64,000 bases of DNA from Geosiphon pyriformis uo1 (taxonomy: Eukaryota > Fungi > Glomeromycota): positions 434,001 through 498,000 of the forward strand of contig JAAOMT010000586.1 of the NCBI GenBank assembly GCA_016748015.1, in the 5' to 3' direction. A program made the position numbers and the translations under genes. The notes below the pieces were generated by a model, which did not search any database, had not been told where the DNA came from, and was given only the letters and a program-made list of their open reading frames with translations. Each line of letters begins with the position of its first letter. Positions within the stretch are counted from its first letter, which is position 1. Below are positions 5,417 to 61,900 of this stretch, one piece after another.

Positions 5417-5490
5417 AAGGATCAAACGAGATAACATTAGGATAAACTAAAATATTTCAATTATTACAATTATTATTATTATTATTATCC

Positions 5491-22800: not shown

Positions 22801-23325
22801 TAACAATGGAACCAATTGCAAAAATAAAAGACTAGATAGAAGTACTTTTTAACACCAAAAAATTATCACCACAAAGAACATCAAACTTGCTACAAGCTGA
22901 AGATATCTGGTCAGAAAGAATTTTAGATAAAATTTTATGTGCAGTATTGACTAAAGCAATAGGCTTAGTATTTGTTAAAATGCCATTCCATTTATAAGAC
23001 TTTGAGATTATCAAAATTCATGCTCTTTTCCAGGTAGCTGGGACCGTGCCCAAACTCAAACACGAATTCAGCAGCTCCAAAAGACAGGCCAACATCTTCT
23101 TACCACAATGTTTCCAAAGTTCATTAGGTATTTCAAACATATCAGCCACTTTACCATTAGGCAAGCCATCAACAATTAAAAACAATTCTGTTATATTAAT
23201 CACTTTTATCACACTAAAGAAGGCATCATTATCTACATAATTCAGAGGCATGTATTGACAAAACCACAGATCAGGCATTTTGGGGAGCACCAACTGCCTT
23301 CTTGTCTATCCTTCTATTATCTCAT
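19878..23325 (-). mobile_element. LINE 3' part: RT, RNase H, C-terminal zinc finger, polyA tail (pseudogenised)
   Basis: T18 at 19878-19895 is the polyA. RT motifs KPIALVNT, QDMHKAYNSV, QGVVFS, FIDD. RNase H IYMDES...ELQAVALAL...YLDSQ. CLLC-x6-HGFTC. Many stops. Confidence 0.9.
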
Positions 23326-26300
23326 TGTTACAGATAATTATTTGAGATCTCAAAGCAAATAACAAACTCATAACTTGGTGCTCAATTGATATAATGTTGT
23401 TGGTAATATCTGAAGGTGTTGTTTTATCTGAAGGTTTTGTTGTAGAGTCCTTTGTATAATAGACAAAGATTCATTATAATTGGTTTTGGTTGATTTCCCA
23501 AGTCATTTTCCCAATTTCTGTCTTCAGCATGGTGGCTGGTTTAATCTGGCAGTTATGCTTTTCTGGTAAGCTATCTGTTAATATATATAATTCTACTCTT
23601 ATTTCTGGGTCTTTTACCAGGCTATCCTTGACATCAATTACTCAGTGTTTAATCTCTTTAATCAGTAGTAAGTTAACAAACAAAAGAAAATAAAATAAAA
23701 GAAAAGAAAATAAAAAGAAAATAAGAAATTAGAAATAAGCCAAAGCAATTCAAGTTAGTATCTTGTCAATAGCCATAATCAAGAGCTATTGTTTCAGTGT
23801 GGTTAAGTGTTAGATTTTATTAACATGAAGTGTTAATAAATGGAAGAGTGATTATATTTTCAAACAAACGACAATAACATGGATTTGAAGAATTAGAGAG
23901 ATCTTTTATTTATATAATTTCATTTTGGTTGATAGCAACTATCCTTGAAATGAGAATTAATAAATAGAAAAGAAAGAGAATTGTTCTAAATTAATAAAAC
24001 TCTATTGAATTCTCTAGGAATTACTTTTTCTGCTTTTAATACTCTTGCTATTACCAGTAGAATTTTAGCTATTAATTAGCATGAAATTACCCTTATAATT
24101 CCTATAATTCATTAGTATATTAATATCATTTCAAATTATCATTTATTATTTAATCAATTATCACATATCACAATTCAATTAAATAATCTAATTAGTATAA
24201 CAAAAAGTAGGATGATCAAATTACACAATACCCTGAACTTTGTAACATTCAAAAATTCGCCAAAATTTACAGAAATTCGCCGAAATTATGAATAGTTTAC
24301 CCAAATTAATCAATAGTTCAGCGAAATAACTTGTAGTTCATTAAAATGTATCTTTAGTTTGCCGAAATTTGAGCAAAGAGAAAAAGTGCAAGTTCATAGA
24401 CTAGTACTACAACAAGCTGTATAAAAGAAGAGCTTTTCTCTTCAAGAAAATGTATCTTACTTTAAATTTATCACTTAGAACCATTTCTATACACACAAAA
24501 AAAAATAAATATCAAATAAATTCGAAAAACCAAATTCTTTAATTATTGCACTTAGAAAATCCCCAAAACCCAACTAACGTTTTGAAATTGATTAGCTACC
24601 AATTTCAATAAACTGTTAGTGACTCTAGGCCTGGATAGAAAACATTTCTCTTGATAAAATTCTATTTCTTTTACATTTCTTTTATTTTTCTTTTCTTTTC
24701 TTATTACAATTATTANNNNNNNNNNNNNNNNNNNNNNNNNNNNNNNNNNNNNNNNNNNNNNNNNNNNNNNNNNNNNNNNNNNNNNNNNNNNNNNNNNNNN
24801 NNNNNNNNNNNNNNNNNNNNNNNNNNNNNNNNNNNNNNNNNNNNNNNNNNNNNNNNNNNNNNNNNNNNNNNNNNNNNNNNNNNNNNNNNNNNNNNNNNNN
24901 NNNNNNNNNNNNNNNNNNNNNNNNNNNNNNNNNNNNNNNNNNNNNNNNNNNNNNNNNNNNNNNNNNNNNNNNNNNNNNNNNNNNNNNNNNNNNNNNNNNN
25001 NNNNNNNNNNNNNNNNNACAAACACCAAATTTACCACTCAACCGTTTCTCTAGACCAGAAGATTTTCAGTCACCTAGAAACCCTACTCAACAGCAAGAAC
25101 CAATATCAACAAGTGCTAATATCATTGATTACTTACAGGAAAACGAAAGTAATCATTCAGAAAGCTTGGAAAGTAAAGAAACCGAATCAGAACCAAAAGA
25201 AATTACAGAAAAAGAAAAAGAAATGACAACTGCTTACATTGCAAAAATCCCAGAATTCACTGGTGAAGACAATGATACCAGTCTTCAAGAATGGCTTGAC
25301 AAAGTTCAAAAAGCAGGAGATGCTAATGGTTGGATTGTAGCAAGAATGCTCAAAGCAATTCCCTACTTTCTCCAAAGAACAGCAGGAGAATGGTTTGAAA
25401 ATTTAGAATTTGAAAACTGGCAAGCATTCAAAGATGCTTTTCTACAACAATTCATTAACAACAATACCTCTATCACTCTCAGAAACTGCTTTCACAATAT
25501 CAAACAAGAAACATCTGAATTTGTTATAACTTATCTTAGAAGATTTAACAAACTTCTTAGATGAATCTAACAATTAGAAACCAATGATTACTATTTTGAT
25601 GCTTAAATTCTGGATCAGTTTATAGCAGGGTTAAAAGACAAACTGATTAAGAAAGTCTGTCCACATGCTCCAGCAGACTTAGCAACTGCTATTAGACATG
25701 TAAAGATNNNNNNNNNNNNNNNNNNNNNNNNNNNNNNNNNNNNNNNNNNNNNNNNNNNNNNNNNNNNNNNNNNNNNNNNNNNNNNNNNNNNNNNNNNNNN
25801 NNNNNNNNNNNNNNNNNNNNNNNNNNNNNNNNNNNNNNNNNNNNNNNNNNNNNNNNNNNNNNNNNNNNNNNNNNNNNNNNNNNNNNNNNNNNNNNNNNNN
25901 NNNNNNNNNNNNNNNNNNNNNNNNNNNNNNNNNNNNNNNNNNNNNNNNNNNNNNNNNNNNNNNNNNNNNNNNNNNNNNNNNNNNNNNNNNNNNNNNNNNN
26001 NNNNNNNNNNNNNNNNNNNNNNNNNNNNNNNNNNNNNNNNNNNNNNNNNNNNNNNNNNNNNNNNNNNNNNNNNNNNNNNNNNNNNNNNNNNNNNNNNNNN
26101 NNNNNNNNNNNNNNNNNNNNNNNNNNNNNNNNATCAGACACCATCCACTCAACAATATCAAGTACCAGCAAGAAGATTGGTTCAACATAACCAATTCACA
26201 CCCCAAAATCAATTGCAGAGTAACCACAACAGAATCAATCCAAATAACCAGTTGGTTCCCCGAAATTCTGGTCAACAAAGACCTAATCACTATCACACTT

Positions 26301-27829
26301 AACCCAGTTATCTTACAATACCAGAGGAATCGGATTTTCAACAAACTGCACTTTTTGAAGATGAAGTTTCAGTACCAAGATCAAATCCTTCCAACCATAT
26401 CATTCCACCAGCTCAAATTGCCCAAAATGCCAATCTGTCAGATATATTTCCATTTGAATTTGAAGCAAATGAATCACTTTTTCTGCTTAGTAATGCAGCA
26501 GTCAATGAACAGAAAGCAATTACTGCTATATACACAGAAGCTACAGTGGAAGGAAAGCTCATTTGCTTAATCTTAAATAGTGGATTAGCTGGAAGTATCA
26601 TTACTTACCAGCTGATACAACAACTCAAACAAAATGTAGACAGACCAGCTCAAACAGTTATTGTCACAGTTGATGGTATGAAGAAGACTCTAGTAGGAGA
26701 AATTGATGATTTCTCTTTTTCAATTAATAGAATCACCATTCCAGTTAAAGTTCTTGTTATGAATGCACCCCAATATCAAGCTTTAGTCGGAAATAATTGG
26801 CTTTTCAAGGCCAATGCAAACCTGAACTGAGAAACTCAAGAACTTAAAATCTCATACCAAGGACAATATACCATAGTACCTGCAATCTGTGGTATCTTTA
26901 ACAAACAATCAGAAAAAGCTTCAGTATTTGAATTTGAAGAGGAGAAAGAAATGCCACTTACTGAAACCTACATGGCTCTTGGATTAACATCCAATTGGGC
27001 TAAAAAAACAGAACAAGAGATTTTTAAAGAATCAAGGGGATGGAAGAAAGTTAGATATTCTACACCAGAACCACGGAAACAACCACTCTATATTCCACTC
27101 AAATGCAAAGATTGCAACAAAAAACTTTCATCAATGGGAGCATGTATTTCTCCAAAAGAGGAATATGAAACTTGTATCTGTTACTTTTGCAAAGCATGCC
27201 ATAGAGAATGATTTGGATCTCCAAAAAGAAGTGGAAAGTGGGACAACACACCTTGCCTTACATGTGGAGAAATGCTACCAGAAGAATGCAATTGAATTGA
27301 TGTAGTAATAAAAGAAGGAGTATGTGATCAAATCTGTTAATATGCTCTATCAATTTCGGAAAAAGTCAGAAGAGGAACACCATTTGATGCAGCATACAAC
27401 AGTGCTCTCAATAAACTTTACCACTACTCTCATAATGCTAAAATGATTTTTGACCTAGCAATGGCATTAATTAATGGAGCCACCCAAGAAGATGTTTGCC
27501 AAATGAAAGAAGCTAAATATATTGAGTATACTATGAAATTAGCTGGATTGGATTATAAAGATGAAGTAGAAACCTACCACCAAATTGCAAGCCACACATA
27601 TCCGACCAAAGAAGCTCAAATTCAACAATTAAAGCAAATAAACATTCAATTATGTGAAGAATGTGTTATGCCTTGTGATGACCAATAGTATTTAGAATGT
27701 TATGCTCTTAGCATTCCTCTGCCAGATGGAAATGATGAAAATGAAATCGAATTTGGAGTATCTGAACTAGTAGAAGAACTACCAACCACTCCCATCTATC
27801 TTCTTGAAAAGCAACCACCTCTACAACTT

Positions 27830-28260
27830 AAATATTTTGACAACCAAGGCCAAGGAATCAGACCAGAAAAAGCACATGAAATTGATGCTAGATATGACCT
27901 AAGATACCCAGAAAAAGATACTTTGGTTCTCCAACCAAAGTTTTTGACAAAAATTAATTTCAAAATTGCTCTTGAAATTTCACCAGAAGCAATGGTTCAA
28001 ATTGCCTCCAGATCATCATTGGCAAGCAAAAGAATCAATATTAGAGGAGGAGTTATAAATGCAGGATATACTGGAGACATTATCATCATGTTACAAAATA
28101 AGACAGACAAATCATTCAAAATTGAACATGCTGAAAAAATTGCCCAAGCAATTTACTTACCCTTAATAACCATTTCGAGTTTACAATCAGTAAACAACAG
28201 AGAACAATTGGGAAAAAGTGAAAGAGGAACTCAAGGTTTTGGTTCAACTGGACGATTTAC
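27830..28260 (+). pseudogene. dUTPase domain of B1 pol
   Basis: ARYDLRYP, QIASRSSLAS, GGVINAGYTGDI, KIAQAIYLP, ERGTQGFGSTG (motifs 1-5). Confidence 0.9.
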
Positions 28261-30147
28261 AGTCCCAATAAACATAGCTCTTAATACACAAAATAAATCT
28301 CACCAGATTTTTCAACTTCCCCAACCAATTACCATTTTATCTTTTGGAGAACATCACAAAATTTACACCTGACGACTACCCAACAAATCTTTAAATCCAA
28401 TGAACAAATTTGTTTGAAGCATGAAATATCGATTTCAAACGTTTATATTCTCAAAAGAATGAAAAAATTTCAAGTTACATTCTACAACCCCAATAATTAT
28501 CCTATTGTCTTATTAAACAAATTAGAAATTGGAATCATACACAGCAATATCTTTCAAGATGAAAATCCTCAAACTGTCTCTAATTTCATCGAAATTGTAA
28601 AGCACACTCTACTCCCAAATCCAAATATCATTCCCATTACTGAAAACTACCACTTGCTGGAAAAAAAACTCTCTCGAATCAATATGGGTTCCTTAAAACC
28701 TCAACAACAAAGACAACTAAAACAATTGATAACTAAATTTGCAGATATATTTGCAAAAGACAACAATGATTTGAAAAAAACAGACATTGTTCAACATCAG
28801 ATCCATACAGAAGATGCTTTACCAAAACGTCAACAAGCTTATCAAGTGCCACCTATAAGCCACCAATTCATCAGAGAAGAGGTCCAAAGAATACTCAATA
28901 ATAGATTAATTCAACCATCAAGAAGTTCTTGGGCCTTACCAGTAGTTTTAGTTAAAATGAAAAACGGAAAAATCAGATTCTGTGTTAATTATAGACAACT
29001 GAATAGTGTTACAATTGGAGATGCCTACTCTCTTCCAAGAATTGATGACATGCTAGATGCTCTAGGAAAAGCCAAGTTCTTTTCAACTTTAGACCTGAAA
29101 AGTGGATACTGGCAAGTCAAAATGGACTCAAAAGATAGACCCAAAACAGCATTCACCACTCAAAGAAGAAACTATGAGTTTAATGTTATGCCTTTTGGAC
29201 TCTGCAATGCACCAGCAACATTTCAGTGACTCATGGATGTTGTCTATAAAGGGCTCTTGTGGCAATCAGTAGTTGTCTATCTTGATAATACTGATGTATA
29301 CTCACCAAGCTTTGAAACCCATCTCATTCACCTGCAAAAAGTTTTTCAATGATTACGGAAAGCAGGATTAAAGTTAAATATTAAGAAATGTCACTTTGAA
29401 AAAACAAGCTTAATCTTTCTTGAACACATAGTTAGTAAAGATGGAATCAAACCAAATCCAGGAACAATCAGTGCTGTCAAAAACTTTCAAACCCCCAGAA
29501 ATACTACAAAACTAAGAGAATTTGTGGGATTAGCCTCTTACTATCAAAAATTCATAAAAGGATTCTTAGAAATTGCCAAACCACTCAATTATCTTACCAA
29601 CAAAAACGTACCATATAAATGGACTGAAAAACAACAAAAAGCTTTTGAAATTCTCAAAACAAAATCGACAACAGCCCCAGTTCTTGCTTACTCAGACTTC
29701 AACAAACAATTCCAATTAGCCATTAATGCTTTACACATAGCATTTGGTGCCATCTTATCACAATTGAATGAAAATGGCCAAGAACAAGTTATTGCCTATG
29801 CCAGCAGAACACTTAAGCCAACAGAACTCAAATATGGCTCAATTGAATTAGAAGCTGCCACAGTTATTTGGGCTCTTAAACATTTTCAACAATATCTGAA
29901 GAATGGAAAAGAATTTGACATAATAACGAACAACATTGGCCTCAAATGGCTCAATAAAAAGAAAACTGAACAAAATGCCAAACAGTCTCGATGGAATGAC
30001 TTTCTAGCAGACTACAGATATATTGTATATTACAAACCAGAAAAACTACATACTAATGTTGATAGCCTCTCAAGAATGAAACAAGATTAATACCAACAAC
30101 AATTCCACCACAACTTACCAACTTACCAACAAAATAACCAAACAAGA

Positions 30148-31482
30148 ATGGACTCCAGAAATTACAGCAATCTTAAAAATTATTTGAAGACTCTTACCAT
30201 GCCAGAAAACTGGTCTCTAAGTGAAAAACACTGCTTACAACACCAATCAAAACAATATTTCATACACCAGAACAAAATCTATTATAAAAATCACAGAAAA
30301 CCAAGCCAGTCACTCAGATTAGTACAAGAGAATAAAAAAAAAACAATTTTATACAACATGCACACAGATCCGTCTTCAGCACACTTGGGAAGAGATAGAA
30401 CAATTCAAAGAACCCTTGAACATTATTTTTGGCCTCACATACAAAAAGACATTTGACAATATGTAGAATCTTGTGATAGTTGTCAAAGAAAAGGAAGAAC
30501 TTGCCCCACAGAACCTTTAAATCCAATCAAAGTTAGACAACCTTTTGACAAAGTTGGAATTGATTTAGTCAGACCATTACCTATCACAACCCAAAAGAAT
30601 CATTATATTGCAGTTGCAGTGGATTATCTTACCAAATGGCCTGAAGCTAGAGCCATCCAAAAAGCAGATGCAAAATCAGTAGCAAATTTCATTTATGAAG
30701 ACATTATCTGTAGACATGGATGCCCAATTGAACTCTTATCTAATCAAGGAACACATTTTGTAAACAACTTGATACAAAAAATTTGTGAACAATTCAATGT
30801 CAAAAGACTTCTATCATCACCATATCACTCTTAAACAAATAGACTTGTAGAACGTTTCAACAGAACATTGTGTGAATCTCTAGCCAAAGTCTCAACAAAC
30901 TTTGAGCAGGAATGGCATATCTTTATTCCATCAGTGTTACTAGCATACAGAACACTAAAACAAAATACTATGAAACACACATCATTTAATTTTACTTATG
31001 GAAGGACAGCAACATTACCAATTAATTTCACAGTGGAAACATACCCAGTGCAACCAATCAATGAAGAAAACTTTCAAGAGACACTCCAAAGAAGAGCCTA
31101 CACTCTTTTTACTACACTGGAAGGAAAAAAAAAAATAGCAGCAACTCATATTGAACATTCCCAAGCTCAACAAAAAAAAAGACATGACAACAAATTACTA
31201 CTTATTACCAACGAATTTAAAGTTGAAAATAAAGTTCTCTTACACAGAACTAAGGCTGAAAAACAATGGAGTGGAAAATTTGAAAACAAATGAGATGGAC
31301 AATTTTATATTCACGAAATTCTAGGTAATGGATCATATAAGTTAAGACTTGATGACAAAATACTAGCAAAAGTTGCACATGGAAACAGATTGAAGCACTA
31401 TCATTCCAGAAACAATCCTGAACTATTAATTCCACAAATTGATACACATTCCCTTTTAATTAATCCTAAAGATATTCCCTAA
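30148..31482 (+). pseudogene. B1 integrase (separate ORF after the RNase H stop)
   Basis: HHCC (MH...AHLG...CDSC), VGIDLV, DYLTKWPEA, NQGTHF, GLVERFNR-like, W-GQFYI (GPY/F). No chromodomain seen. Confidence 0.9.
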
Positions 31483-31717
31483 AATTTAGAACCAATAATT
31501 ATAATAGAACAACAACTAAACTTGAACACTTAAATTTTACAATAATTCTCTAATAAAAACACCAAAACAAAAATAGTAAATAATTACAAAACACTCAAAC
31601 CCAAAAACAAATAAAAACTCCATATCCAAAAATAATTTTCTTTATTCTCTCTTTTCATAATTAGTTAATTTTATCATGATTATTCCTCGAAATATTTAAC
31701 AAATATCCCAAAAATTA

Positions 31718-32383
31718 ATGTTAGCCTTAAAAACACTCCCTAACTTATCTATAACAATTAATGGAAGTCAAATTAATTACATTCAGAAAGAAACCACAGC
31801 CCCAGTAGCAAATTATTTACAGAACTATCACCCCTATAGAAAAAAAACAAGAAGTCACTCTGAAAATAGATTATCAAGACTTTTAAAGCAAGCACTAGAA
31901 GAAAATCTTTTAATTGCCCCTATTGACATTCCACCAAATGCTACAATGTAACAAAAACTTCTACTACTTCTCAATAAACAAAACAATAAACACACCTCTA
32001 TCTATAAATACTTTTACATTGGAAAAACACTTTATGAATGAAAACTGGAACTTGAAGCAACAAATCTCACTCCTGAAGTCATACAAAAACAAATCCACAA
32101 TAAATTCAAAACAGCAGCTGGACCAACAAACACTCGCTACAAACTTAGAGCAGCTCTTAAACTCTATGACTTGTTTAATACTTGTGAAAATGTACTACAA
32201 AATCCAATACTGCAACCAATGAAAGTCCAATATATTGGCAAACTTACAAAACTGAAATTTCAACAATTTTCAGACCAGATTACTTCAATTATTTTGGATC
32301 ACTATCTCAATATTACAGATAGTGCTTGGACTTTGACGGAGCTCAGTCTTGAGGAGGAGATTATGTTACCAATAGAATTTTAG
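31718..32383 (+). pseudogene. B1 ORF3 (about 220 aa, unknown function, no transmembrane segment) running into PPT/3'LTR
   Basis: One reading frame with 2 internal stops. Homologous ORFs occur in B2 (37408-36743) and C (54302-54865). Confidence 0.7.
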
Positions 32384-33796
32384 TTATTAATTAGCATGAA
32401 ATTACCCTTATAATTCCTATAATTAATTAGTATATTAATATCATTTCAAATTATCATTTATTATTTAATCAATTATCACATATCACGATTCAATTAAATA
32501 ATCTAATTAGTATAACAGAAAGTAGGATAATCAAATTACACAATACCCTGAACTTTATAATATTCAAAAATTCGCCGAAATTTATAAGAAATTCGCCGAA
32601 ATTTACAGAAATTCGCCGAAATTATAAATAGTTCACCCAAATTAATCAATAGTTCAGCGAAATAACTTGTAGTTTATTAAAATGTATCTTTAGTTCGCTG
32701 AAATTTGAGCAAAGAGAAAAAGTGCAAGTTCATAGACTAGTATTACAACAAGTTGTATAAAAAAAAGCTTTTCTCTTCTGGAAAATTTATCTTACTTTAG
32801 ATTTATCACTTAGAACCATTCCTATACATACAAAAAGAAATAAATATCAAATAATTCGAAAAAAAACCAAATTTTTTAATTATTGTACTTGGAAAATCCC
32901 CAAAACCCAACTAACATTTCGAAATTGATTAGCTACCAATTTCAGTAAACTGTTAGTGACTCCAGGCCTGAATAGAAAACGTTTTCCTTGACAAAATTCT
33001 ATTTCTTTTACATTTCTTTTATTTTTTTTTCTTTTCTTCTTACAATCATTAGGGTAGCTTACAGACAAGATTTCTGTAGAAGAGTTGACTTTCACAGCAA
33101 AGTAACTACATATTTTAGTAAGCTTCCAGATGAGCAATTCTTGGGAAAAGGTTGACATTTACTACAACATAACTACATAAAGTAACTGGCACGGAATTGG
33201 CCATTCCACTTATAAGCCCAGCAGTTCAAATTATAAGAGATAATTTGAAGATAAATTCAGTTATTGGAGGTTCAACCACATCCAGAAAACGTGAAATCAC
33301 AATAAACAGGCATCAACAACATTTAAAAAAAGAGACCAAAAACCTCCGGTAACATCGCTATATATATATAATTTATATTATATAAGATTCTGCACATTTG
33401 TGAGCAATGTGCCATGATTTCTCAAGCAATGCTTACATTGCTGAGCAATGTGTCTGTAATTTCTGACAATGTGCTCATTGCTGAACAATGTGCTGTGATT
33501 CTCTGACAATGCTTCACATTGTTGAGCAATGTGCTCACATACTAAATACTATTCTCTTATTGGTCTATTTTTTCTATTTGTTTTTCCTACTATTTTCTTG
33601 TATTCTTTTTCTATGAGTAACATTATTCTCTCTTTTAATATTGAGCTCCTGCAAAATCTTCTAAATTTCTCTTTTGTATCAATGTTGTTGCTGTAATTTC
33701 TATTGCTATTTATAAATCTAATTTTATATGTTGTTACTTATAAAAAGAAAATAGGTATGGAAAATAGCAAACCAATAAGAAAATAGTATTTAGCAT

Positions 33797-33990
33797 GTGA
33801 GCATATTGCTCAGCAATGTGGAGCAATATCAGAAATTATGGCACATTGTTCAGCAATATGGAGCAATGTTAGAAAACATAGCACATTGCTCAGCAATGTG
33901 GAGCAATATTAAAAAAGTAGAGCACATTACTCAGCAATGTAAGCATTGCTCAAGAAATTATAGCACATCACTCAGAAATATGAACAATCT
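33797..33990 (+). repeat. 40-41 bp tandem repeats with palindrome CACATTGCT-C-AGCAATGTG in LTR U3 (type 1)
   Basis: About 5 units in the C 5'LTR and about 3 in the C 3'LTR (54945-55050). Also present in the A1 LTRs. Confidence 0.85.
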
Positions 33991-34784
33991 CGTAGAACAT
34001 CAATTATGTATAAATAACAGTAGCATTAGAAGGGAAAAGCAGAATCCTTTAGTTAGAAATCTTCAATTCAAAAATATTGAATAAATAAATTATTTACCTT
34101 CCAAATCCATTCTTCACTATTAACATTCTATGTTGATAGCAATTGATACTTAACCACACTAGAACAATAGCTCTTGATCATGGCTATTGATAAATACTAA
34201 TTTGTGCATTGCCTTGGCTCATTTCTTTATGTCATTTCTTTTATTTCTTGCCTTAATTGTTGTTATTACTAACTCTATTAAGGATTAACACGCGAAGTAC
34301 TGACATCAGAATATAGCACTGGTAAAAGACCCAGAAATAAGGGTAAAACACTCAATTAAGGATAGCTTATCAGGAGGAATACCAGCCATCAAGCTGAGAA
34401 AGAAATTGATGAAACTGCAGTTTTGGGAAGCTACAGATAAAACTATTATCACTGAGTCTCTGTCTATTATACAAAGAACTTAACCAAAGCCTTCAGATAA
34501 ACACATCTTCAGATATTACTAACAATATTATATCAATTGAGCACCAAGTTACGGGTTTGTTATTTGCCTTGAGACCCTAAGTAATCATTTGTAACATTTG
34601 GTGTTCCCTATGAGGTATAATCTTACAGAAAATCAGTACTAACAAATAAATCAACAGTAACAGAATCAGAAAATATAGGAGCAAACTATTTAGGATTTGC
34701 GAAATCCTTATTTTAATACTACTGTCAACACTTGGGATTAACTCTGAATTACATATTAACAGAATTAGCCTTCAACTTTTACAT

Positions 34785-35763: not shown

Positions 35764-35767
35764 ACAT

Positions 35768-48600: not shown

Positions 48601-51600
48601 CACTTTAGCACCACCATCCAATTATCATTAACCAAAATTGGAATGCATTGATTGTGGCAAAAAATTGTCATCAATAGATGCATGCTGTGGCGATGACAAG
48701 GAATACTCCATGGCCACAAGCTTTTACTGCTGCCCATACATCATAGAGCACTTTGGACGACCAAAATGACAAGAAAAGTGGGATAACCAATTATGTCTCA
48801 CATGTGAAACTATTTTACCTGACAAAAGAATGTGGAATGACATTCCTGGGTGTGGAAGAACGTATAATGAGACATGCCAGTACACCATACTGATAAATAA
48901 TTGGGTAAGCAAAGAAACACCAATCAATGACACCTGGAAATGAGCGTTGCAATGATTGGAAGAATATTCTCACAATGAAAATAAACTATGGAGAATGGCA
49001 TATGCGAAAGCAGAAGGTGTGACCACTAGTGAATTATTAGAAATTAAAAACAACCCTTTATCTCTTCCTAAACCCGAATATGTCCAAACTTTTGATGTCT
49101 TTGGCAACATTAAAGATGACCCAGAAGAATTTCATAAACATTACCAGTGTTTGGCATCTATTAGGGAAGAACAGGAGCAGCATTTAGAGCAGTTGAACAC
49201 TCAATTATATTAACATTGCTTAATTCTCTGTGACTTTCAGTATTGTAATAAGTGTGACCTTATTTACAATCTACCACCATGCATGATCTACACAATCCCA
49301 GAAAAAGATGAACCAATAAGCAACTGCCCATCAGAATCGGAATCAGTTTTCAATCCTGATTCAAACTCCGACAATGACAACAACAAAAACACTGGTTCCA
49401 GCTCTGTTCAAAATAACAACAAAAACAACAGCAATTGGGACTCTGATTTAAACCCAGAAATATATATCACACTCCTTGATCTCACCAAGGAGCAGACCTT
49501 GAAATGGTTCAATGATAATGAAGAAGGGATCATGCCAGAACATGCACATGATACTGATACCAGATTTGATCTGAGGTATCCAGAGAAAGATGTCATCAAA
49601 TTAGAGCCACATTTGTGCATCTGTATCGATCTGAAAATAGCATTGGAAATACCAGCAACAACTATGGTTCAACTAGCTTTCAGAAGTAGTTTAGCAAAAA
49701 GAGAGATTAATATAAGAGAAGGAATAATTGACACCAGATATGTAAAAAATATAATGGCAATGCTACAAAATAACTCAGAAAAGACCTATATAATAGAACC
49801 AAATGAAAAAATAGCACAGGCGATATTCCTGTCTCTGGTTAGAGTAGTTCAGTTAGTATCAATAAAAAAAAGGGAAGAATTAGGAATAACAGCTAGAGAA
49901 ATATAGGGATTTGAATCAACAGGTAGAATAAATATACCAGTTAATATGGCAAAAGAAAAAAAGATTGACCAAGGAGAAATTATTTCAACCAGTCAAGTAA
50001 TTTCCATTCCATCATATGACCAGTACATAGTAATTATAGAGAGAAAAGTAAAAGATAAGAATCAGATTTTTGAAGCAGAAACAAGCCTTTGTGAATCAAG
50101 AGAGATTGGACTCATTAATCTCCACATACCAGCCAAAAACCACAACCATATCAAAATTTCCATTTACAACACCACAGGAGATATTATCATAATACCAGAA
50201 GAAATTATCATTGGATACATAAGCACTAAATTAGAAAATTAACCACCAAGCATTATTCCAGATTTTTCACAGCTATGCAGATATGTAGATATTATGTCAC
50301 AAACAATCTATGAATGAAATGAATGTTATTTGCTCCAACCAGAATAATTGAAACAAATAAACATATAAAATTTGGATTCACTTCAATATATACAACTCAA
50401 GATATTACTCAACAACTTCAATAACATTTTCGCTAGTGAAAACAAATTTGGCAGAACTGACATCATCCAACATCAGATCAAGACTGGAGATGCTATGCCA
50501 ATCAAACAATAAGCATACAGAGTACCACCAGCCAGCCATGAAATTATCCATCAAAAGATCAACTGAATGCTTAACAACGGACTAATTCAGCCATCTATGA
50601 GCCTATGGTTATTACCAATGGTACTTGTTCAAAAGAAGAATGGAAAGATCAGATTTTGTGTGAATTACAGAAAACTCAATGGAGTTACCCGTGGAGACAG
50701 CTATCCAACTCCACAAATTCAGAAGCTATTCAATGCTTTTGGAGGAAATAAATGGTTTTCAATACTGGATCTAGACAGTGAATACTGACAAGTAGCCATG
50801 GATCCAGCAGACAAAAAAAAAATGGCTTTTATGATGAGAGAAGGGAATTTCGAGTTTGAAGTTATGCCATTCAGCTTGATGAATGTTCCAGCCACATTTC
50901 AACGGCTAATGAAAATAGTATATACTGGATTATTGTGGAAATCAGTAGTCATTTATTTAGATAACACCAATATGTTTTCCAAAACATTCAATGATTATTT
51001 GCATTATCTACAACAAGTGTTTGAAAAACTATGATAAGCAAGGCTAAAGTTAAATGCCAATAAGTGCTTCTTTGGTAAGACAGAATTAAACTTTTTAGGG
51101 CACATAATAAGCAAAAACAGCATTAAAACAGATTCAAAAAAGATAGAGATAGTCAAGAACTTTCCAGTACTAACTAATGTAACAGAGTTGAAGTTATTCT
51201 TGAGATTTGCAGGCTATTATCAATGCTTTATTAAAAACTATTCTAAGATAGTCCAATCACTCAATCATCTCCAAACCAAAAATGTGAAATACAAATGGAC
51301 AGAAGCACAACAAGAAGCTTTTGATATTCTAAGAAGAAAGCTTATACAAGCTCCAGTACTGATTTATCCAGATCACAATAAACCATTCATTATTATTACC
51401 AATGCATCAGGCCAAGCATTGGAAGCAGTATTATCACAGAGAGGACTAGATGGAAGAAAACATCCAGTTGCATATGCCAGCCGAGGTTTAACTCCAGCTG
51501 AAAGAAATTATGGAACACCAAAACTAGAACATTTAGCAATTTATTGGGCAGCCATGAAATAGAAAGAATACTTAAGCCAGAAGTTTGAGGTGTATACAGA

Positions 51601-51732
51601 TCACAAAGGATTGACATCACTCCAAAAACAAGAATTTGGAGATGGCAGACAATCCAGATGAAAAATAGCACTCTCACCATATATTTATATCATACATTAT
51701 AAAAAGGGAAAAGACAATGGAAATGTGGATGG

Positions 51733-52702
51733 TGTTACCAGACAAAATTAAAGATATTGCTTAGCATAAAATTACTTTTATAATTCTTATCATTAATTAA
51801 CATTTCAAATTATCACTTATTATATTAGCAAAATATCCAAAATTATTATTTAATTAAAAACCCAATTTGTACATAACACAAATGTAACCTAATTGCAATG
51901 ATTAATTATGCAATATCTCGAAATATGTAACATTCAAAAAGTTTGCCAAAATTTGTAGAAATTTGCCGAAATAATTGATAGTTCACCAAAATATCTAATC
52001 GTTTGCAGAAATAACTTGTAGTTTGCCGAAATGTAGCTTTAGTTCAGCAAATTGTAGAAAAAAACAAAGTTCAAGTTCATAGAATAGTGTTATAACAAGT
52101 TGTATAAAAGAAGAGCTTCTTTCTTTGAGAAAATGTATCTTACTTTAGATTTATCACTTAGAACCATTCTTATACACACAAAAAGAAATAAATATCAAAT
52201 AATTCGAAAAACCAAATTCTTTAATTATTGCACTTGGAAAATCCTCAAAACCCAACTAATGTTTTGAAATTAATTAGCTACTAATTTCAGTAAGCTGTTA
52301 GTGACTTCAGGCCTGGATAGAAAACACTTCCCTTGATAAAAATCTTATTTCTTTTACATTTCTTTTATTTTTCTTTTCTTTTCTTATTACAATCATTAGG
52401 GTAGCCTACAGACAAGATTTCTGTAGAAGAATTGACTTTCACAGCAAAGTAACTACACATTTTTTAGTGAGCTTCCAGATGAGCAATTCCTGAAAAAGAG
52501 TTGACATTTACTACAATATAACTACATAAAGTAACTGGCAAGGAATTGGACATTCCACTATAAACCCAGCAGTTCAAATTATAAGAGATAATTTAAAGAT
52601 AAATTCAGTTACTAAAGGTTTAACCACATTCAGACAACATGAATTCACAACAAACAGGCATCAACAACATTTAAGAAAAGAGACCAAAAACCTTCAGTAA
52701 CA
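51733..52702 (+). mobile_element. Solo LTR F (B family) in element C at the end of RNase H
   Basis: TGTTACC...AGTAACA, similar to the B1/B2 LTRs, flanked by ATGG/ATGG. It splits N-V-D|G-L-S. Confidence 0.9.
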
Positions 52703-55700
52703 ATGGTTTGTCACAAATAAGACAAATCTAAGAACATTTTAACCTAAAAATATAACAAAACCAAACCAAATCCAACGAAAATATAACAAAAGATAAACAC
52801 ACAAAAATACCAACAATTCAAACATTATATAGATACTCAACAGTTCAAGGAGAAATTATCTCAATCAGAACAAAATAGTATTAAACAACAATCGAAATAC
52901 TTTATCACTTACCAAAACATACTTTATTGGAAAAATAGACAAAATCCAGATCAACCAACTAGAGTAGTTACAGAACCAGAGAAAAAAACAATACTGTTCA
53001 ACATGCACTCAAATCTAACAGCAGAACATTTCCACAAAGAAGCAACTATAAAAAGAACCAGAAAAAGATACTATTGGCCATCAATGTATCCAGACATTAT
53101 CTAATATGTCCAAAATTGTGATTCTTGTCAAAGAAAAGAAAGAACAAAACCCAGTAAACCACTGAGACCAATCAAAGTGAGACAACCATTCAATCACATT
53201 GGAATTGACTCAGTCAGACCATTAACAATTACCAGCAGAGGAAATAAATATATTGCAGTAGCCATAGACTATCTCACTAAATGGCCAGAAGCAAAAGCAA
53301 TTCAAAGAGCGGATGCAGAATCCATTGCCAAATTCGTTTATCAAGATCTGATTTGTCAACATGGATGTCCAAAAGAATTATTATCAGACCAAAGAACTCA
53401 CTTTGTGAACAGAACACTAGCAGAATTGAGCCAAAGATTCGGAATTAAAAAACCACTATCATCACCATATCATTTATAAACAAATGGTTTAGTTGAAAGA
53501 TTTATTAGAACATTGTGTAAAGCAATTGCCAAACTCAGCCAAGAAAACCAGGACGAATGGGATTTGTTTATACCATTAGTACTATTTGCTTATCAGACAA
53601 TAAAGCAAGACACTACACAAGCAACACCATTTAAATTAGTATATGGTAGAACAGCAACATTACCAGTTAAGATAGAAGTCAACACTTATCTAACAGAACC
53701 AATAACAGAAGAAAATTTCCAAGAGACATTGTTAAGAAAAACATATAACTTAATAGAAATATTTGAAAACAAACAAAGAAGAGCAGCTGATAACATACAA
53801 AAGTCACAAGAGAAACAGAGAAAAAGACATGATAATCAACTACCAAACAAACCAGTTGAATTCAAGATTAAAGACAAAGTACTTCTACATCATACTAAAG
53901 TGGAAAAACAATGGAGTGGAAAATTTGACCCCAAATAGGACAGACCATTCCACATTGAAGAAATTCTTGGAAATAGAGCTTATAAATTAAGATTGAACAA
54001 CAAAATTTTGACCAAAGCAGTACATGGTGATCAACTGAAACCATATCACCAAATAGCATCATCATCCACCAATAACATTCCACAATTAGGAGTATAATGA
54101 ATACTAGTTCAACCAGACAAGATTCCATGAGATCTGGAACCAATCATAATTATTGGACCAAACACATAAAATCAAACAATAAAAGAGTATATAAAGACAC
54201 AGTATATGTAACAAAGGCAACCAAGAAAAATAGAAATACCAGATCATATTCACATAATAGCTCAACAATTGTTTCAGGCTTTAAGTTAACAACAGTTAGA
54301 TATGGAAATTATCATTAATAACCAAACAATTTGCTATCAAAACACTAAAAAAAAGACAAAAAATACACCATATCAGTGTTTACCAAAGCATGATAAAAAC
54401 TGGTCAGATAACATAATTGAAAAAATAAAGAACACTTTTGGAAAATTACCTATTATGGCACCAACAGAAGAATTTACAAAAGAGAATTGGAAGCAATAGA
54501 CAGAACAACTTCTAATATCATATTGTTACTACCAATTAGGTCAAAAGTTGAATATTCAGAAATTGTATATTGACAAATTCAAGAAAGTATTTAACCAAAA
54601 CATAATACAGCAAATTGAAGAATTCATTGGAAAAAAGATGAACTCAACACTATATGTGAGAACAATTTATTGACTACACAACATATTTCAGAACTATCTA
54701 GAAATACTGTTACACTCCGACATAGAAACCATATCCATTAACCAATGAGGAAGAATGAACAATACACAAGTAAAAGATGTGAAAAACAGAGTCGAACAAA
54801 CAATACTTGAAAAAGAAATATTAAAATTAATTCAAAACAAAGATTTTAATGGAGCTCAATATTAAAGAAGGAGATAATGTTACTCATAAAAAGAAAATAG
54901 CTATGGAAAATAGCAGACCAATAAAAAAATAGTATTTAGCATGTGAGCACATTGCTCAGCAATGTGGAGCAATGTTAGAAAAGTAGAGCACATTGCTCAG
55001 CAATATAAGCATTACTCAAGAAATCATAGCACATTGCTCGGAAATGTGAGCAATCTTGTAGAACATCAATTATGTATATATAGTGGTAGCATTAGAAGAG
55101 AAAAGCAGAATCTTTTAGTTAAAAATCTTCAATTCAAAAATATTGAATAAATAAATTATTTACCTTCCAAATCCACTTTTTACTATCAACACTTCATGTT
55201 GATAGCAATTGATACTTAACCACACTGGAACAATAGCTCTTGATCACAGCTATTAACGAATACTAACTTGCATATTGCCTTGGCTTATTTTTTTTATTTC
55301 TTGTCTTAATTGTTGTTATTACTAACTTTATTGAGAATTAATGCACGGGATACTGACATCAGGATATAGCACTGGTAAAAGACCCAGAAATAAGGGTAGA
55401 ACACTTGATTGAAGATAGCTTACCAGGAAGAATACTGGCCATCAAGCTGAGAAAAAAATTGATAAAACTGCAGTTTCGGAAAGCTACAGATAAAACTATT
55501 ACCACTGAATCTCTGTCTATTATACAAAAAACTCAACCAAAGCCTTCAGATAAACACACCTTCAAATATTACTAACAACATTATATCAATTGAGCACCAA
55601 GTTATAGGTTTGTTATTTGTCTTGAGACCCTAAGTAATCATCTGTAACAACGTGACTGGAGTTTTTAACTATAGTGGTCTGTTCAAAATATTAATTTCAA

Positions 55701-55828
55701 ATCTTGCATTTGTATTATGTGTATGTTCAGGCATAATGCCCTTATTATTATCACTGAATTTAGTTAATTCCTGCTTCATTGTAAGATCTAGAAACATGAT
55801 ATATTGTTCAGTGTTTAAAGTGGAGTTT

Positions 55829-55995
55829 GAATTTGTTGTTGGCAGAGTTTAAATCATTGTTGTTATTAGTGGAGTTTGAATTGTTGTTGTCATCAGTGGA
55901 GTTTGAATTGTTGTTGTCATCAGTAAAGTTTGAATCATTATTGTTATTAGTAGAGTTTGAATCATTGCTGTCATTAGTGGAGTTTGAATCAGGAT
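55829..55995 (-). repeat. 27-bp tandem repeat (about 6 units, DSNSTNNNN-like) inside A1
   Basis: GGAGTTTGAATTGTTGTTGTCATCAGT period; an expansion of the NPDSNSDNDNN linker seen in C at about 49350. Confidence 0.8.
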
Positions 55996-56264
55996 TAAGT
56001 TCTGATTCTGATTTTGATTTGTTCTTGCTAATTGGCTCTTCTTTGAATATATGACACATGGAAGTAGATTGTGACTACGTTCCAATATTCTGACTCAGAG
56101 CTGTTAAGTGAGTTTTGCTGATTTATTGGTACTGTGCAAATTAGGTTTAATTGGGTTATTAGAGGTAAGTTTCCTTGTATGATCGCAGGATTTGGAATTT
56201 ATTGGACTTCAAATGTTCAGGTTTTTGAATAATTCCCAGAGTTTGAATTGCTAAAGGTTTAATA

Positions 56265-56690
56265 AGTTTTAACAAGTTTATCAAAGGTAAGTTTCGAATG
56301 TTTGGGGTTTTAATGATCAGGTTTTGAATAAACAAAGTTTTAATTTAACAAGTTTTTAATGAATTTATCAACAGTAAGTTTTGAATGTTCAGGATTTTAA
56401 TAATTGGGTTTTGAATAAATGGAGTTTTAACAAATTTATTAATAGTATGTTTCAAATATTCAGGGTTTTAACAATCAGGTCTTGAATAATCAGAGTTTAA
56501 TTTAACGAGTTTTTAATAAATTTATCAATGGTAAGTTTTGAATATTTGGGGTTTTAATGATCGGGTTTTGAATAATCAGAGTTCTTAATTTAATGAGGTT
56601 TAACGAATTTATTAACAGTAATTTTTGAATGTTCAGGATTTTAAAAATCAGGTTTTGAATAATCGGAGTTTTAATTTAACAAGTTTTTCA
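56265..56690 (-). repeat. 70-87 bp tandem repeat (about 5 units) inside A1
   Basis: Recurring TTAAC.AATTTATCAA..GTAAGTTTTGAATGTTCAGG.TTTTAAT.ATCAGGTTTTGAATAA. Confidence 0.75.
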
Positions 56691-57810
56691 AAGGTAATGA
56701 TGAAATAAGGATTTCGCAAATCCTAAGTAATTTTCCCTTGTTTTTTCTTGGTCTGCCATTTTCCTGCATGGTTGTTGTTGGTACTGGTTCTCTGTTGGAT
56801 TATACCTAACAGGGAGCACCAAATGTTACAAGTAATTATTTGGGGTTTTAAAACAAATAACAAACCCATAACTTGGTGCTCAATTAATATAATTTTGTTA
56901 GTAATATTTGAAGGTATTGTTTTATCTGAAGGTTTTGTTGTGGAGTTTTTTGTATAATGGACAGAGATTCACTATAGTTGGTTTTGGTTGATTTCCCAAG
57001 TCGTTTTCCTAATTTTTGTCTTCAGTGTGATGGCTGGTTTAATCTGGCAGTCATGCCTTTCTGGTAAGCTATTTATTAATATATATAATTCTACTCTTAT
57101 TTCTGGGTCTTTTACCAGGCTATCCTTGACATCAATTACTCAGTGTTTAATCTCTTTAATCAGTAGTAAGTTAACAAACAAAAGAAAATAAAATAAAAGA
57201 AAAAAAAATAAAAAGAAAATAAGAAATTAGAAATAAGCCAAAGCAATTCAAGTTAGTATCTTGTCAATAGCCATAATCAAGAGCTATTGTTCCAGTGTGG
57301 TTAAGTGTTGGATTTTATCAACATAAAGTGTTAATAAATAGAAAAGTGATTATATTTTCAAACAAATGACAATAACATGAATTTAAAAAATTGGAAAGAT
57401 CTTTTATTTATATAATTTTATTTCGGTTGATAGCAACTATCCTTGAAATGAGGGTTAATAAATAGAAAAAAAAGAGGATTGTTCTAAATTAATAAAACTC
57501 TATTGAATTCTCCAGTAATTATTTTTTCTGTTTTTAATACTCTTGCTATATATATATAATTTATGTTATATAAGATTCTGCATATTTGTGAGCAATGTGC
57601 CATAATTTCTCAAGCAATGCATACATTGCTAAACAATGTGCCTGTAATTTTTGATAATATGTTTATTGCTGAACAATGTGCCATGATTCTCTGACAATGC
57701 TTTACATTGCTGAGCAATGTGCTCACATGTTAAATACTATTCTCTTATTGGTCTATTTTTTCTATCTGTTTTTCTTACTATTTTCTTGTATTCTTTTTCT
57801 ATGAGTAATA

Positions 57811-57954
57811 TTGTCAACCTTAAGCTTTACCTTCTCAGGTTCTATCATCATTACATCATTTACCACTAGATGATCCAAGATCACTTTGCGAAATGGACAT
57901 TCCAAAACACTCTTAATCATCTGACCCTTGTCAGAACAGAAGTTTTTCATATGC
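57811..57954 (-). mobile_element. LINE ORF2 middle fragment (144 bp) between LTR insertions A1 and E
   Basis: MKNFCSDKGQMIKSVLECPFRKVILDHLVVND...EKVKLKVD. It joins ...IRKTINW upstream (58902) and EIIEG*TRR downstream (23325) once the TSDs are removed. Confidence 0.85.
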
Positions 57955-58901
57955 TGTTACAGATGATTATTTGGGGTCACAAAGCAAATAAAAAATCCGT
58001 AACTTGGTACTTGATTGGTATTCTGGTGTTGATAATCTAAAGGTTTTGGTTGATCTAAAGGTTTTGTTGTAGAGTTTTTTATATAATGGACAGAGATTCA
58101 CTATGGTTGGTTTAGATTGTTTTCTCAAGTTGTTTTCCCAATTTCTGTCTTCAGTGTGGTGGCCAGTTTAATCTGGCAGTTGTGCCTTTCTAATAAGCTA
58201 TCCATTAATATATATATAATTCTACTCTTATTTCTGGGTCTTTTACCAGGCTATCCATGACATTAATAACTCAGCACTTTAATCAATTAGTAAATCTGAA
58301 AGAAATAACCAAAAAAAAAAAAATAATAAAAAAATAAAAGAAAATGAATGAACAAGTAAAAGCAATTGCAAGTTAGTATCCTGTCAATAGCCATGATCAA
58401 GAGCTATTGTTCTAGTGTAGTTAAGTATCAATTACTATCAACATGAAGTGTTGATAGCGAAAAATAGATTGAGATAATGAATAATTATTTATTGATATTT
58501 GCGAATAGAAGGTGTTTTTAAATCAAATCTAAACTGGGAGGTTTCTAACTAAGGATTCTGTTTTTGTAATTTTAATAATTATGATTTGTGAGTCTAATTG
58601 ATTCTATGAGTCTAATTGACTCCGTGAATCAATTGACTCTGAGTTTTATTGACTAATTTTCTAACTTCTGATACTACTGCTATATATATATATTTGAAAT
58701 TCCTCAATTTCTTAATTCTTCATGTCAAGAATCCTGGAATTCCTGGAATTCTGCAATTCTTTTAAGAAGAATTCTGGAATTCTGGAATCTTGCAATTCCT
58801 CTTATAAGAATCCTGTAATTCTTGGAATTCCACATTTACTACATTTATCTATGATTGGCTAATTTATATGCTAATATACTTCCTATATTTTATGAGTAAC
58901 A
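57955..58901 (-). mobile_element. Solo LTR E in LINE ORF2
   Basis: TGTTACA...AGTAACA, flanked by ATGC/ACAC. U3 resembles D and U5 resembles A1. Confidence 0.9.
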
Positions 58902-61900
58902 ACACCAGTTAATAGTCTTTCTAATTTTAGCATCTTCAGCCAATTTAGACTCAAAATACTTAAACTTCTGATATTTTCTCTTTACCACCAATAAATGCTT
59001 GACTAAATTACTCAAACCAACACTATCTAAAACCATGCCAACAATCTTAGATGCCTCAATGCCATCAATAGACATCCAAACCTTAACAAAGTAATCAAAA
59101 TTCAGAAGATTACCAGAGTTCCAGCATCTCACAATTTTAACAATAAGCAGTTTCAGCTTATGAAATTTTGACAATTGCTTGTTTTTTGAACAATTATATA
59201 CACTATACCAGCTTTTAGAGAACATCTTAGTTGCAGTTTGCACTATGGCACCCTCTAACAGACTCCACATCAAATTCAAGTCACTAACATTCTGTGCGAC
59301 CTCAAATTTGTCTAAACTGGCCAACAATGTAGCAGAAAAACCCTCCTTAAAATGTAACCACTGAACCTCATTAGCATTCTCTAACTTGAACTTCTATTGA
59401 TTACAGTTGGTCTGCTTATAAACACTGATAAGATGAGTATCCAGAAGCCCACCCAAACCAATTGAGACTGAAACTGACTTATGATTTGTATCAAAAAATC
59501 CAAACATCTCATTGACTGTATGCAACACAACTGCAGATGCCAGGTTCTTACTTATAAAAATAAAATTTATAATTCTCTCAACACTCTTAAAATTGTTCCA
59601 AGTAAGAGTATTGGCTAATGCATGTTCATTGAAAGTATTGACTAGACTCAAATCCAACCAGAACCTAAAACTAACACTCCTCTTAGATTCATTCTCATTA
59701 AAATCACCACTCAGAATCACAAAAAAGCTGGAATTGACTGCTTTAGAAACCATAGAATTAATATCAGCAGCTTGGCCAAAATGCATACTGGTAGATACAC
59801 CAGCATAAAAACCCAAGATTGTAACCAAAAGTTTGTTCTTAAACAAAAGGTGCATAAAAATTAAATGGCCAGAAATCTTTTCCACTTTTGACACATGTTG
59901 AGCCAAAGAATTGTCTATAATTACAGTAACTTCAGCACCACAAAAACCAACATCCAAACCAGTTGTGAAAACTCAGATGTTTGCAAACTTATTCATAATT
60001 CAAGGCCTAATATTAGACCTCAATTTTGTCTCAGTAATAATAGAAACCACATTATCCGAATTCTTATGCCACCAAACAATATAATCCTGTTTAACCAAAT
60101 TTGTCATGTCCCTAACATTACATATGACCACTCTTCAAACTAGCTTAATTATTGATGTGAACAATATACCAAGGAGCCTGTATTTACACACAACAGATTT
60201 AACTTTCTCAAAATTGAGCTAATAGAAACTTCAAGAGCTACTATCTTTGATTCCAAACCACCAACTTTAAAAGTAAGAACTTTTGAACTACTCAAACTCA
60301 AATTCACAGTGCTGTATACAACATCAGAAGATGGAAAAGGAAATAAAGACAGTAAAATATCCAGAACCATATCAGCATCTGACATCAACACCACAGAAGC
60401 AGAAACAACTGGAGATCCAACTTTGGAGACAGACACCAGAGGCACTAGCTCTATACCATCCAACCTGCACAATATATCTGACACTTGATCAGCTAGCAGT
60501 TCCAAGGAGTGTTCCAGTAAAGCCAGATGGTCATTAATTGAAGAATCATCATTACCAACCAGTATGTACCTTTTACCATGCAAAGTCCCACCAGGAGAAA
60601 AACCAGACTTAAAACTAAAATTGGAATGAGAACCACCTAAAAAAAAAAAATCAAGCAAAACCACCTGTGCCCAAGACTTGCCACCAAAGGCAGCAGGGCA
60701 GAAAATAGGAACATACTTTTTTGCATACAGTTTAGCCAGCTGAAAATGATGCACTTCAAAAGCAACTCTTTTAATGAACTTTTGATGCATAGTATTGGGT
60801 GTAGTTGCTATATCACATTTCAAAGTAGAATGACCAAAATGCTCACAATTCTCACAGTGAACCAAATCCAATCTAGTCCAAGAGAGTTTAATACCATTAA
60901 ATATTGGCTCAGTACAATATGCAAACTTTAATGCCTTATCAGAATTGAAACAAACAACAGCACAACAGATTTTATTGCCAGTTTCCAATAAACAATTAAT
61001 GAAGCAGATTTTCTCACCAGCCTTCTCCAGAAGATGCCCAAGATTATGTGCTATTGTTCCCACAAGCAGAGTAAACAAAAATGCTCTAAACTGATTCCTA
61101 GATACCCAAATCTCATAATCACCTACTGTTTTGGCTACACACACAGAATTTTTACCAATCAGAAATGACCACTTTAAGGCCAACAAATCAGCTTGGTCCA
61201 ATTCAGCAAACTCTACCACAGTTTTTTGCCATATTCCAATTAATTGAATCTTGATTGACTTAATTTTTCCAAATTCAAATACTGTGGTGACAATCATGTC
61301 TTTAGGTGTATTCATGGAAATTTCTCTGATTATCACAGCCTAATCTGACCTCATTCCTTGTCTCTTAAGATTACTGTTTACATCAATCTCTTTTTCTTTA
61401 ACCAATAATACGGCCATTTCTATGCTCTTTTCTGAAGTGAAGATAAATCTGATGATCTCCTTAAATTTTGAGGAGGTAGTGGCCCCCCCAAAACCATTGA
61501 CTGAAGAAAAAATTTTCCTGATGAATTGAGTCTTTGCTATCATTGACTTCTCATCTACAGTACTAAGATTGATATCAAGAGCAAAGAATTTCTTGGTAGA
61601 CACTTCAATCTGAGTTTTAATAATTTTTGGGTCTATCTATTTTTTTTCTAAGAAAATAGGGAGGCAAAGGAGAAGAATAACTTTTTTATCATCATCCATA
61701 ACAAAATTAGGAGAACTGAGAGGAAAACCAAAAATAGCACTAATATCAATATGCTTAGCTTTGGGAGTATTGGCAGCTGAATTCAGAAGAGACCCAACAT
61801 TAATATCAGTTATGTCAACACCTTTTTTATCACCAGACAAACTATCTACATTAAAGAACACATTATCACTAAGCTCAGACTTGCTGAGAGAGATATCTTT

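Follow-up and report, generated by a model that had tools for sequence, protein, structure and literature searches.

Do the long terminal repeat (LTR) retrotransposons stacked on one another in a stretch of the Geosiphon pyriformis genome choose CpG dinucleotides as their targets? We analyzed a 64-kb window (C659:434001-498000 of the 128-Mb assembly of this member of the Glomeromycotina; coordinates below are window positions), in which seven LTR insertions form a nest between 23.3 and 58.9 kb. An earlier note on this DNA had described these insertions, here called A1, B1, B2, C, D, E, and F, together with the 4-bp sequences flanking them, and every insertion and flank was present where it had been placed. 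The note had also proposed that integration is centered on CpG, possibly methylated CpG, and that this would steer new copies into silenced islands of transposable elements (TEs). We found that the real rule is an obligate pyrimidine-purine (YR) center of the 4-bp target-site duplication (TSD), with C preferred to T.

We examined TSD centers in two surveys. The local survey comprised the window and twenty 10-kb loci (identified below by numbers with the prefix L) fetched around A-family LTRs, 264 kb in total, with LTR ends defined by BLAST; it yielded 124 LTR ends, 82 of them outer ends. A YR dinucleotide occupied TSD positions 2-3 in all 82 outer ends, against a background of 22.8%, and YR frequency at other offsets in the same flanks was 16-32%. 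The genome-wide survey consisted of pattern searches for exact LTR termini with their adjoining bases, from which primer-binding site (PBS) and purine-tract flanks and obvious duplicates were removed; the ends were drawn from among the matches listed in each search. Among these listed matches, the center was YR in 429 of 437 ends (98.2%), with CA in 183, TG in 154, TA in 56, CG in 36, and other dinucleotides in 8. The TSD-center pattern first seen in the window therefore holds genome-wide and belongs to the families rather than to this particular nest. The note's guess that CG, TG, and CA together would be expected at about 0.14 per site also proved accurate (0.141 measured in the whole window and 0.148 in the TE nest), and at this measured background the six distinct window sites with such centers have a probability of about 1e-5.

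The target logo was symmetric, with about 1.1 bits at each central position (M-Y-R-K); the consensus was V-Y-R-B, and the best sites were (A/C)CG(T/G). At TSD position 1, the base joined to the LTR end, frequencies were A.46, C.28, G.15, and T.11, and position 4 mirrored these; T at position 1 (0.11) and A at position 4 (0.13) were both disfavored relative to a background of 0.36. The third base outside the TSD was A or T in 92% of cases. We consider it likely that these features (the 4-bp stagger, the obligatory YR step at the center, the graded preference for C over T, and the symmetry) reflect an intrinsic sequence preference of the integrase, with a center favoring C/G. In the mechanism that we propose, the integrase makes staggered cuts 4 bp apart in its target and is itself strongly selective for sequence: the central step is pyrimidine-purine, with C favored over T at position 2 and, as the motif is symmetric, G over A at position 3. 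As in foamy-virus and murine leukemia virus (MLV) intasomes, the target may be sharply bent and unstacked at the central step, which would need a flexible YR step, with direct base contacts perhaps accounting for the additional C/G preference. Once an insertion has occurred, its two TSD copies change independently of each other through C-to-T and G-to-A transitions, most rapidly at CpG, which leaves many duplications hidden.

We measured decay in the sister LTRs of ten elements (B1, B2, and C of the window, and those in L004, L005, L007, L008, L011, L016, and L018), which differed by 714 transitions and 47 transversions. A C/T difference was seen in roughly 21-24% of C columns when the next base was A, C, or T and in 57% when it was G; such differences were also more common after T (32%) than after G (15%). 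All differences between TSD copies in 33 local pairs were likewise transitions, and because of this pan-cytosine decay the copies no longer match in 21 of the 33. Repeat-induced point mutation (RIP) with a CpA preference, considered as a source of TG-to-TA and CA-to-TA changes, was rejected, as C/T differences were equally common before A, C, and T. Judged from these sequence comparisons, the decay looks like pan-cytosine deamination rather than CpA-specific RIP, and RIP signatures have been reported to be absent from another arbuscular mycorrhizal fungus (bioRxiv 10.1101/2021.03.30.436303). Deamination of the single-stranded gaps at integration, which predicts CA in the upstream copy and TG in the downstream copy, was also rejected (one pair fits and five are opposite, not significant).

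The share of CpG among the original targets can be read from TSD pairs, of which we compiled 67: 33 came from the local loci, and another 34 were put together by matching coordinates within the pattern lists. Their centers were CG/CG in 2, CG/TG in 6, CG/CA in 4, TG/CA in 6, TG/TG in 17, CA/CA in 15, TA/TG in 8, TA/CA in 5, TA/TA in 3, and CT/CT in 1. CG at insertion is forced in at least 18 of the 67, where one copy is still CG or TG stands opposite CA. This includes four of the seven window insertions, as had been claimed from the way their copies differ: A1 (TCAT 23322-23325 / TTGT 57811-57814), B1 (TTGC 24045-24048 / TCGC 33355-33358), C (ATGT 33728-33731 / ACGT 55650-55653), and E (ATGC 57951-57954 / ACAC 58902-58905). 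The copies are identical for D (ACAT 34781-34784 and 35764-35767), for B2 (ACAT 35764-35767, shared with D, and 45675-45678), and for F (ATGG 51729-51732 and 52703-52706).

Under a decay model, the maximum likelihood estimate of the CG share at insertion from the 67 pairs was 0.40 (95% interval 0.26-0.58). Present-day CG centers amount to 8%, and to 12% in the younger B family, against a background of 0.5-1.1% (the CpG share of all dinucleotides is 0.5% for the loci and 1.1% for the window). LTR DNA that had just been inserted had a CpG share of about 1.3%, as estimated from CpG-derived columns in the ten sister-LTR alignments; TG and CA together make up 12.5% and TA 9.9%. With TpG/CpA set to 1, per-site use was about 7-17 for CpG, about 0.04-0.26 for TpA, and about 0.005 for non-YR steps. 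CpG was the target of about four insertions in ten, and possibly of half, and genuine TpG/CpA of most others; about 55-60% of insertions used TpG/CpA as such, with few into TpA and about 2% into anything else. When B-family TSDs were split by whether a CpG survives at the LTR end (CCGG versus CTGG/CCAG), CG centers numbered 2 of 18 and 9 of 80, showing no difference, and these variants of the LTR end are probably inherited subfamily markers.

A second view of the original targets came from paralogous copies of the host sequence in which the site is empty. The B1 site read TG in 21, CA in 14, TA in 12, and CG in 2 of 51 A-family copies, which indicates that its ancestral state was CG; its empty counterpart within the window, in the other LTR of A1 (57543-57546, + strand), is now TTGC. 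The C site was also ancestrally CG (eight paralogous empty sites: ACAT 3, ACGT 2, ATGT 2, ATAT 1). The nine empty sites for D and B2 (ACAT 4, ACGT 3, ATGT 2) indicate that this site derives from CpG, and within the window the ACAT duplicated by B2 was already ACAT. Further ancestrally CG targets were found in L015, L018, and L009, and at two sites each in L010 and L016. Conversely, the three empty sites for F had TG or TA only, with no sign of CpG. The target in L002, GCAC inside a PBS, had CA in 20 of 20 paralogs, that in L014 had TG in 13 of 13, and L003, L007, L020, and two sites in L004 add to these never-CpG targets. Four of the local concordant pairs (three sites, as D and B2 share one) were CpG-derived, which is the number that the four local discordant pairs predict. 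For A1 and for E, one paralogous empty site each spans both flanks. Hot spots were also apparent, with CpGs inside other TEs struck repeatedly, such as the CCGG near B-family LTR ends and an ACGT in the A/C leader.

Could the YR rule be a product of base composition, of the way LTR ends were defined, or of the same few insertions present in repeated copies? The genome is rich in AT and in repeats, and a few flanks do recur in the lists. However, other offsets in the same flanks stay at background, BLAST-defined ends and exact terminal patterns agree as two independent methods, mirrored control patterns gave only 0-9 hits in total, and p is below 1e-50; such an explanation is already contradicted, and we give it practically no chance. 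(An unrelated LTR family that could serve as a control was not present in the 264 kb surveyed.) The narrower possibility, that every insertion fell on CG and that all TG, CA, and TA centers arose by later deamination, accommodates the four window pairs that differ exactly as CpG decay predicts, the fast decay of CpG here (sister LTRs differ at 57% of CpG columns, compared with about 22% for other contexts), and the several concordant pairs at sites that were CpG in the host family. Yet fully decayed CG targets should yield discordant TG/CA pairs as often as concordant TG/TG and CA/CA pairs at any age, whereas we counted 32 concordant and 6 discordant pairs (p = 1.2e-5), and an all-CG model was rejected by 2 delta-LL (twice the log-likelihood difference) of 24.8. 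In addition, paralogs show a single non-CG form at targets with 20/20, 13/13, 4/4, and 3/3 readings, and the young B2 (96.5% LTR identity, 6 of 9 LTR CpGs intact) has ACAT on both sides, having copied a TSD that the other copy of D also shows as ACAT. Strict CpG targeting is thus already contradicted, and we regard it as very improbable. From the proposal of CpG-centered integration, the strong constraint on the center and the heavy over-use of CpG are retained; that the center is always CpG is refuted by the 32:6 ratio, the rejected all-CG model, and the never-CpG empty sites.

A subtler alternative keeps the YR rule as intrinsic and attributes the extra CpG preference to methylated CpG, read by the integrase or by a methyl-binding host factor, so that new copies would home to silenced TE islands. 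The genome has several C5 cytosine methyltransferase loci, the observed/expected CpG ratio is 0.20 in TE DNA against 0.95 in the adjacent genes, and a high level of CG methylation has been described for the TEs of a related fungus, Rhizophagus irregularis (bioRxiv 10.1101/2021.03.30.436303), which together make methylated CpGs a plausible substrate. Nearly all insertions seen are also inside other TEs, although CpG is rarer there. On the other hand, Pfam found no methyl-binding domain or chromodomain in the elements, and T carries the same methyl group and should equal 5-methylcytosine if the methyl were read, yet TpA is the least used YR step. A pile-up in TE nests is also expected from purifying selection against genic insertions. 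We consider methylation-assisted targeting unlikely on this evidence. The broader idea, that a preference for methylated CpG gives chromodomain-less Gypsy elements a sequence-plus-methylation route into silenced TE islands, in which each hit would erase itself by deamination of the duplicated CpGs, appears doubtful to us. Without methyl-specificity, the argument for steering into TE islands is weak: CpG makes up 2.7% of dinucleotides in the neighboring genes and 0.5% in the TE nest, and since it is five times as common in genes, a plain CpG preference would favor genes, not spare them.

Some points weigh against an intrinsic integrase preference as we have described it. Hand counting may have introduced errors of one or two into the genome-wide tallies, a few flanks recur because they come from segmental duplicates, and the estimated CG share at insertion rests on a simple decay model. 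A contribution of 5-methylcytosine to the CpG preference is possible, and the bend-plus-contact mechanism is drawn by analogy. Moreover, only old, fixed insertions are seen, so selection after insertion is formally possible, although it is hard to see how two central bases would be its target.

The rule can be compared with that of retroviruses. According to the part of PMC4422553 on which we draw, retroviruses with 4-bp TSDs (prototype foamy virus, PFV; Moloney MLV, MoMLV; porcine endogenous retrovirus, PERV; and xenotropic MLV-related virus, XMRV) are enriched for a central YR by 63% on average and disfavor T at position 0 and A at +3, and in the PFV target complex a severe bend unstacks the central step, as flexible YR steps allow. 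The Geosiphon elements resemble them in the 4-bp stagger, the enriched central YR (82 of 82 local outer ends, and 429 of 437 among the matches listed genome-wide), the disfavored T at the first and A at the last TSD base, and a palindromic motif reaching beyond the TSD. They differ in strictness, as a central YR is found at only about 36% of the retroviral sites in that part of the source and at about 98% in Geosiphon. The A/T preference outside the TSD falls on the third base in Geosiphon, one base further out than in the retroviruses described there, and the ranking CG > TG/CA > TA is not reported for the retroviruses in that part of PMC4422553.

Among LTR elements, target motifs are clade-specific palindromes (PMC3276498), and the Drosophila Gypsy group uses ATAT in the 412/mdg1 and Idefix/297 clades, TATA in gypsy, and CGCG in ZAM (PMC3276498, PMC5408687). 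The Geosiphon elements share with this group the 4-bp TSD and a high-information palindromic 4-bp target set by integrase lineage. The Drosophila ATAT has the same A-Y-R-T register as the Geosiphon optimum ACGT, but the Geosiphon center prefers C/G and not A/T as in ATAT and TATA, and the ZAM CGCG and gypsy TATA have a purine-pyrimidine center, the opposite register. The likeness to ZAM and Tirant drawn in the earlier note is hence a loose one: their target contains CG, but CGCG has GC at its center (PMC5408687). The Geosiphon elements are also fungal, carry a dUTPase, and have no recognized env-like open reading frame (ORF), unlike the Drosophila group. An LTR element near the closest long integrase homolog, in another eukaryote (L021 14408-19632, GCA_030710605.1), has TGTTGC...GCAACA ends with ATAT on both sides, showing the A-Y-R-T register of Geosiphon but a T/A center. 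Like chromoviruses, the Geosiphon elements are fungal Ty3/Gypsy elements that accumulate in repeat-rich DNA, and some chromoviruses also have a dUTPase (PMC2864245); unlike chromoviruses, they have no detected chromodomain, and their target choice is visible in DNA sequence, not in chromatin marks. By analogy with these systems, the Geosiphon rule would be an intrinsic integrase preference of a known kind with an unusual C/G-favoring center.

With 98% YR centers and a graded preference for C over T, this rule ranks among the strictest yet seen for the integrase of an LTR retrotransposon, and we found no earlier report of it for Glomeromycotina. The Geosiphon elements offer a natural system for studying the way in which intasomes recognize the central target step, and CpGs inside other TEs become predictable insertion hot spots. 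Since transitions erase many duplications, any pipeline for finding LTR elements that accepts only matching TSDs will throw out genuine elements and misdate them. Should a link to cytosine methylation be demonstrated, it would amount to a new mode of heterochromatin homing.

All LTR termini of the elements are TGTTAC...GTAACA or transition variants such as TATTAC and GTAATA, and all families share the PBS TTTGGTGC and a purine tract ending in ATAA or ATTA. As in Ty3/Gypsy elements, the LTRs have TG...CA ends, the PBS follows the 5' LTR, and the purine tract precedes the 3' LTR; the Pfam domains of B1 also have the Ty3/Gypsy pol order of protease, reverse transcriptase, RNase H, and integrase (protease and reverse transcriptase 28414-29229, RNase H 29524-30090, H2C2 30091-30453, and rve 30457-30831). 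B and C encode dUTPase, protease, reverse transcriptase, RNase H, and an integrase with H2C2 and rve domains (Pfam). From their sequences, B and C, which also have gag, are classified as autonomous Ty3/Gypsy LTR retrotransposons, A as a non-autonomous derivative, and D, E, and F as solo LTRs. The A family has LTRs of about 1 kb around a short non-coding interior and occurs as 3.4-3.7 kb units elsewhere in the genome; because A and C LTRs are 70-80% alike, A is a non-autonomous relative of C. Each LTR query returned 3,600-5,700 first-look candidates in the genome.

In the nest, A1 is split by B1 and C, C is split by D, B2, and F, and E is just outside A1. A1 (23326-57810, - strand) is about 3.5 kb long without its nested inserts; its LTR pieces (23326-24048 plus 33359-33622, and 56824-57810) are 92-93% identical, its PBS TTTGGTGC is at 56823 and below, and its purine tract adjoins 33622. 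The A1 interior also has a tandem array at 56191-56688, with units of roughly 85-160 bp that are 72-81% alike. B1 (24049-33354, +) is inserted in an A1 LTR and C (33732-55649, +) in the A1 internal region; the LTRs of C (33732-34596 and 54878-55649) are 90% identical. D (34785-35763, +), a solo LTR of the A/C/E LTR group, is inserted in the C leader. B2 (35768-45674, -), with gag, dUTPase, protease, reverse transcriptase, RNase H, and integrase, is inserted into the right-hand TSD copy of D, and the 34 differences between its LTRs (35768-36762 and 44702-45674; 96.5% identity) are all transitions. F (51733-52702, +) is a B-family solo LTR in the C pol, and E (57955-58901, -) an A-family solo LTR. 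Preferential insertion beside existing LTR ends, suggested by the TSD shared between D and B2, was rejected: GTAACA-N4-TGTTAC occurred at 8 loci genome-wide against 9 for the control, so the sharing is a chance event.

The dUTPase domain (PF00692, E = 3e-20) lies upstream of the protease, at 40425-41831 (-) and, in C, at 49283-49906 (+). G. pyriformis has hundreds of dUTPase copies whose annotation is hypothetical protein, and dUTPases are known from some basidiomycete and Tuber Gypsy elements (PMC2864245); the presence of a dUTPase alongside heavy C-to-T decay of the copies is a combination that may merit attention. For a 468-aa ORF of B2, all 120 homologs among the matches listed were G. pyriformis proteins. 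The nearest long integrase homolog was in an unrelated large eukaryotic genome (the L021 locus above), and closer integrase relatives were on short metagenome contigs without both LTRs. The absence of a chromodomain, as had been claimed, was borne out in seven stop-free pieces downstream of rve from B1 and C (decayed copies), with no Pfam hit at E up to 0.05, and two more intact metagenomic relatives list H2C2 and rve only. We also recognized no env-like Pfam hit or ORF in the elements. About 500 codons of B1 (30835-32363, +), located after the integrase core and before the purine tract and with equivalents in B2 and C, have no Pfam match; a targeting or reader module, if the element has one, would be in this stretch.

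Both assembly gaps of the window are inside B1: gap 1 (24716-25017) is 302 N standing for about 860 bp, and gap 2 (25708-26132) is 425 N standing for about 450 bp. Neither touches a junction, and every junction is in uninterrupted sequence. The three B1 pieces (24046-24715, 25018-25706, and 26133-33354) are collinear with B2 (45677-45007, 44144-43456, and 43005-35768), and the A1-LTR pieces flanking B1 abut on the other LTR of A1 with a 4-bp overlap. One public contig confirms the left junction of A1, and public short contigs from one sample bridge neither gap. The first two B1 pieces (24049-25706) are 97-98% identical to B2 (43456-45677) and the remainder of B1 is 92% identical; the left LTR of B1 is also nearer to the B2 LTRs than to its own right LTR (90.6%). 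From this patchwork of identities, B1 is possibly a mosaic, produced by gene conversion between the inverted neighbors or by a scaffolding mix-up at the gaps. Finally, two very AT-rich stretches (GC 12-17%) at 18950-19900 and 62170-63270 flank the block of genes and TEs; the two match at 65-68% with one inverted relative to the other and are probably low-complexity repeats.

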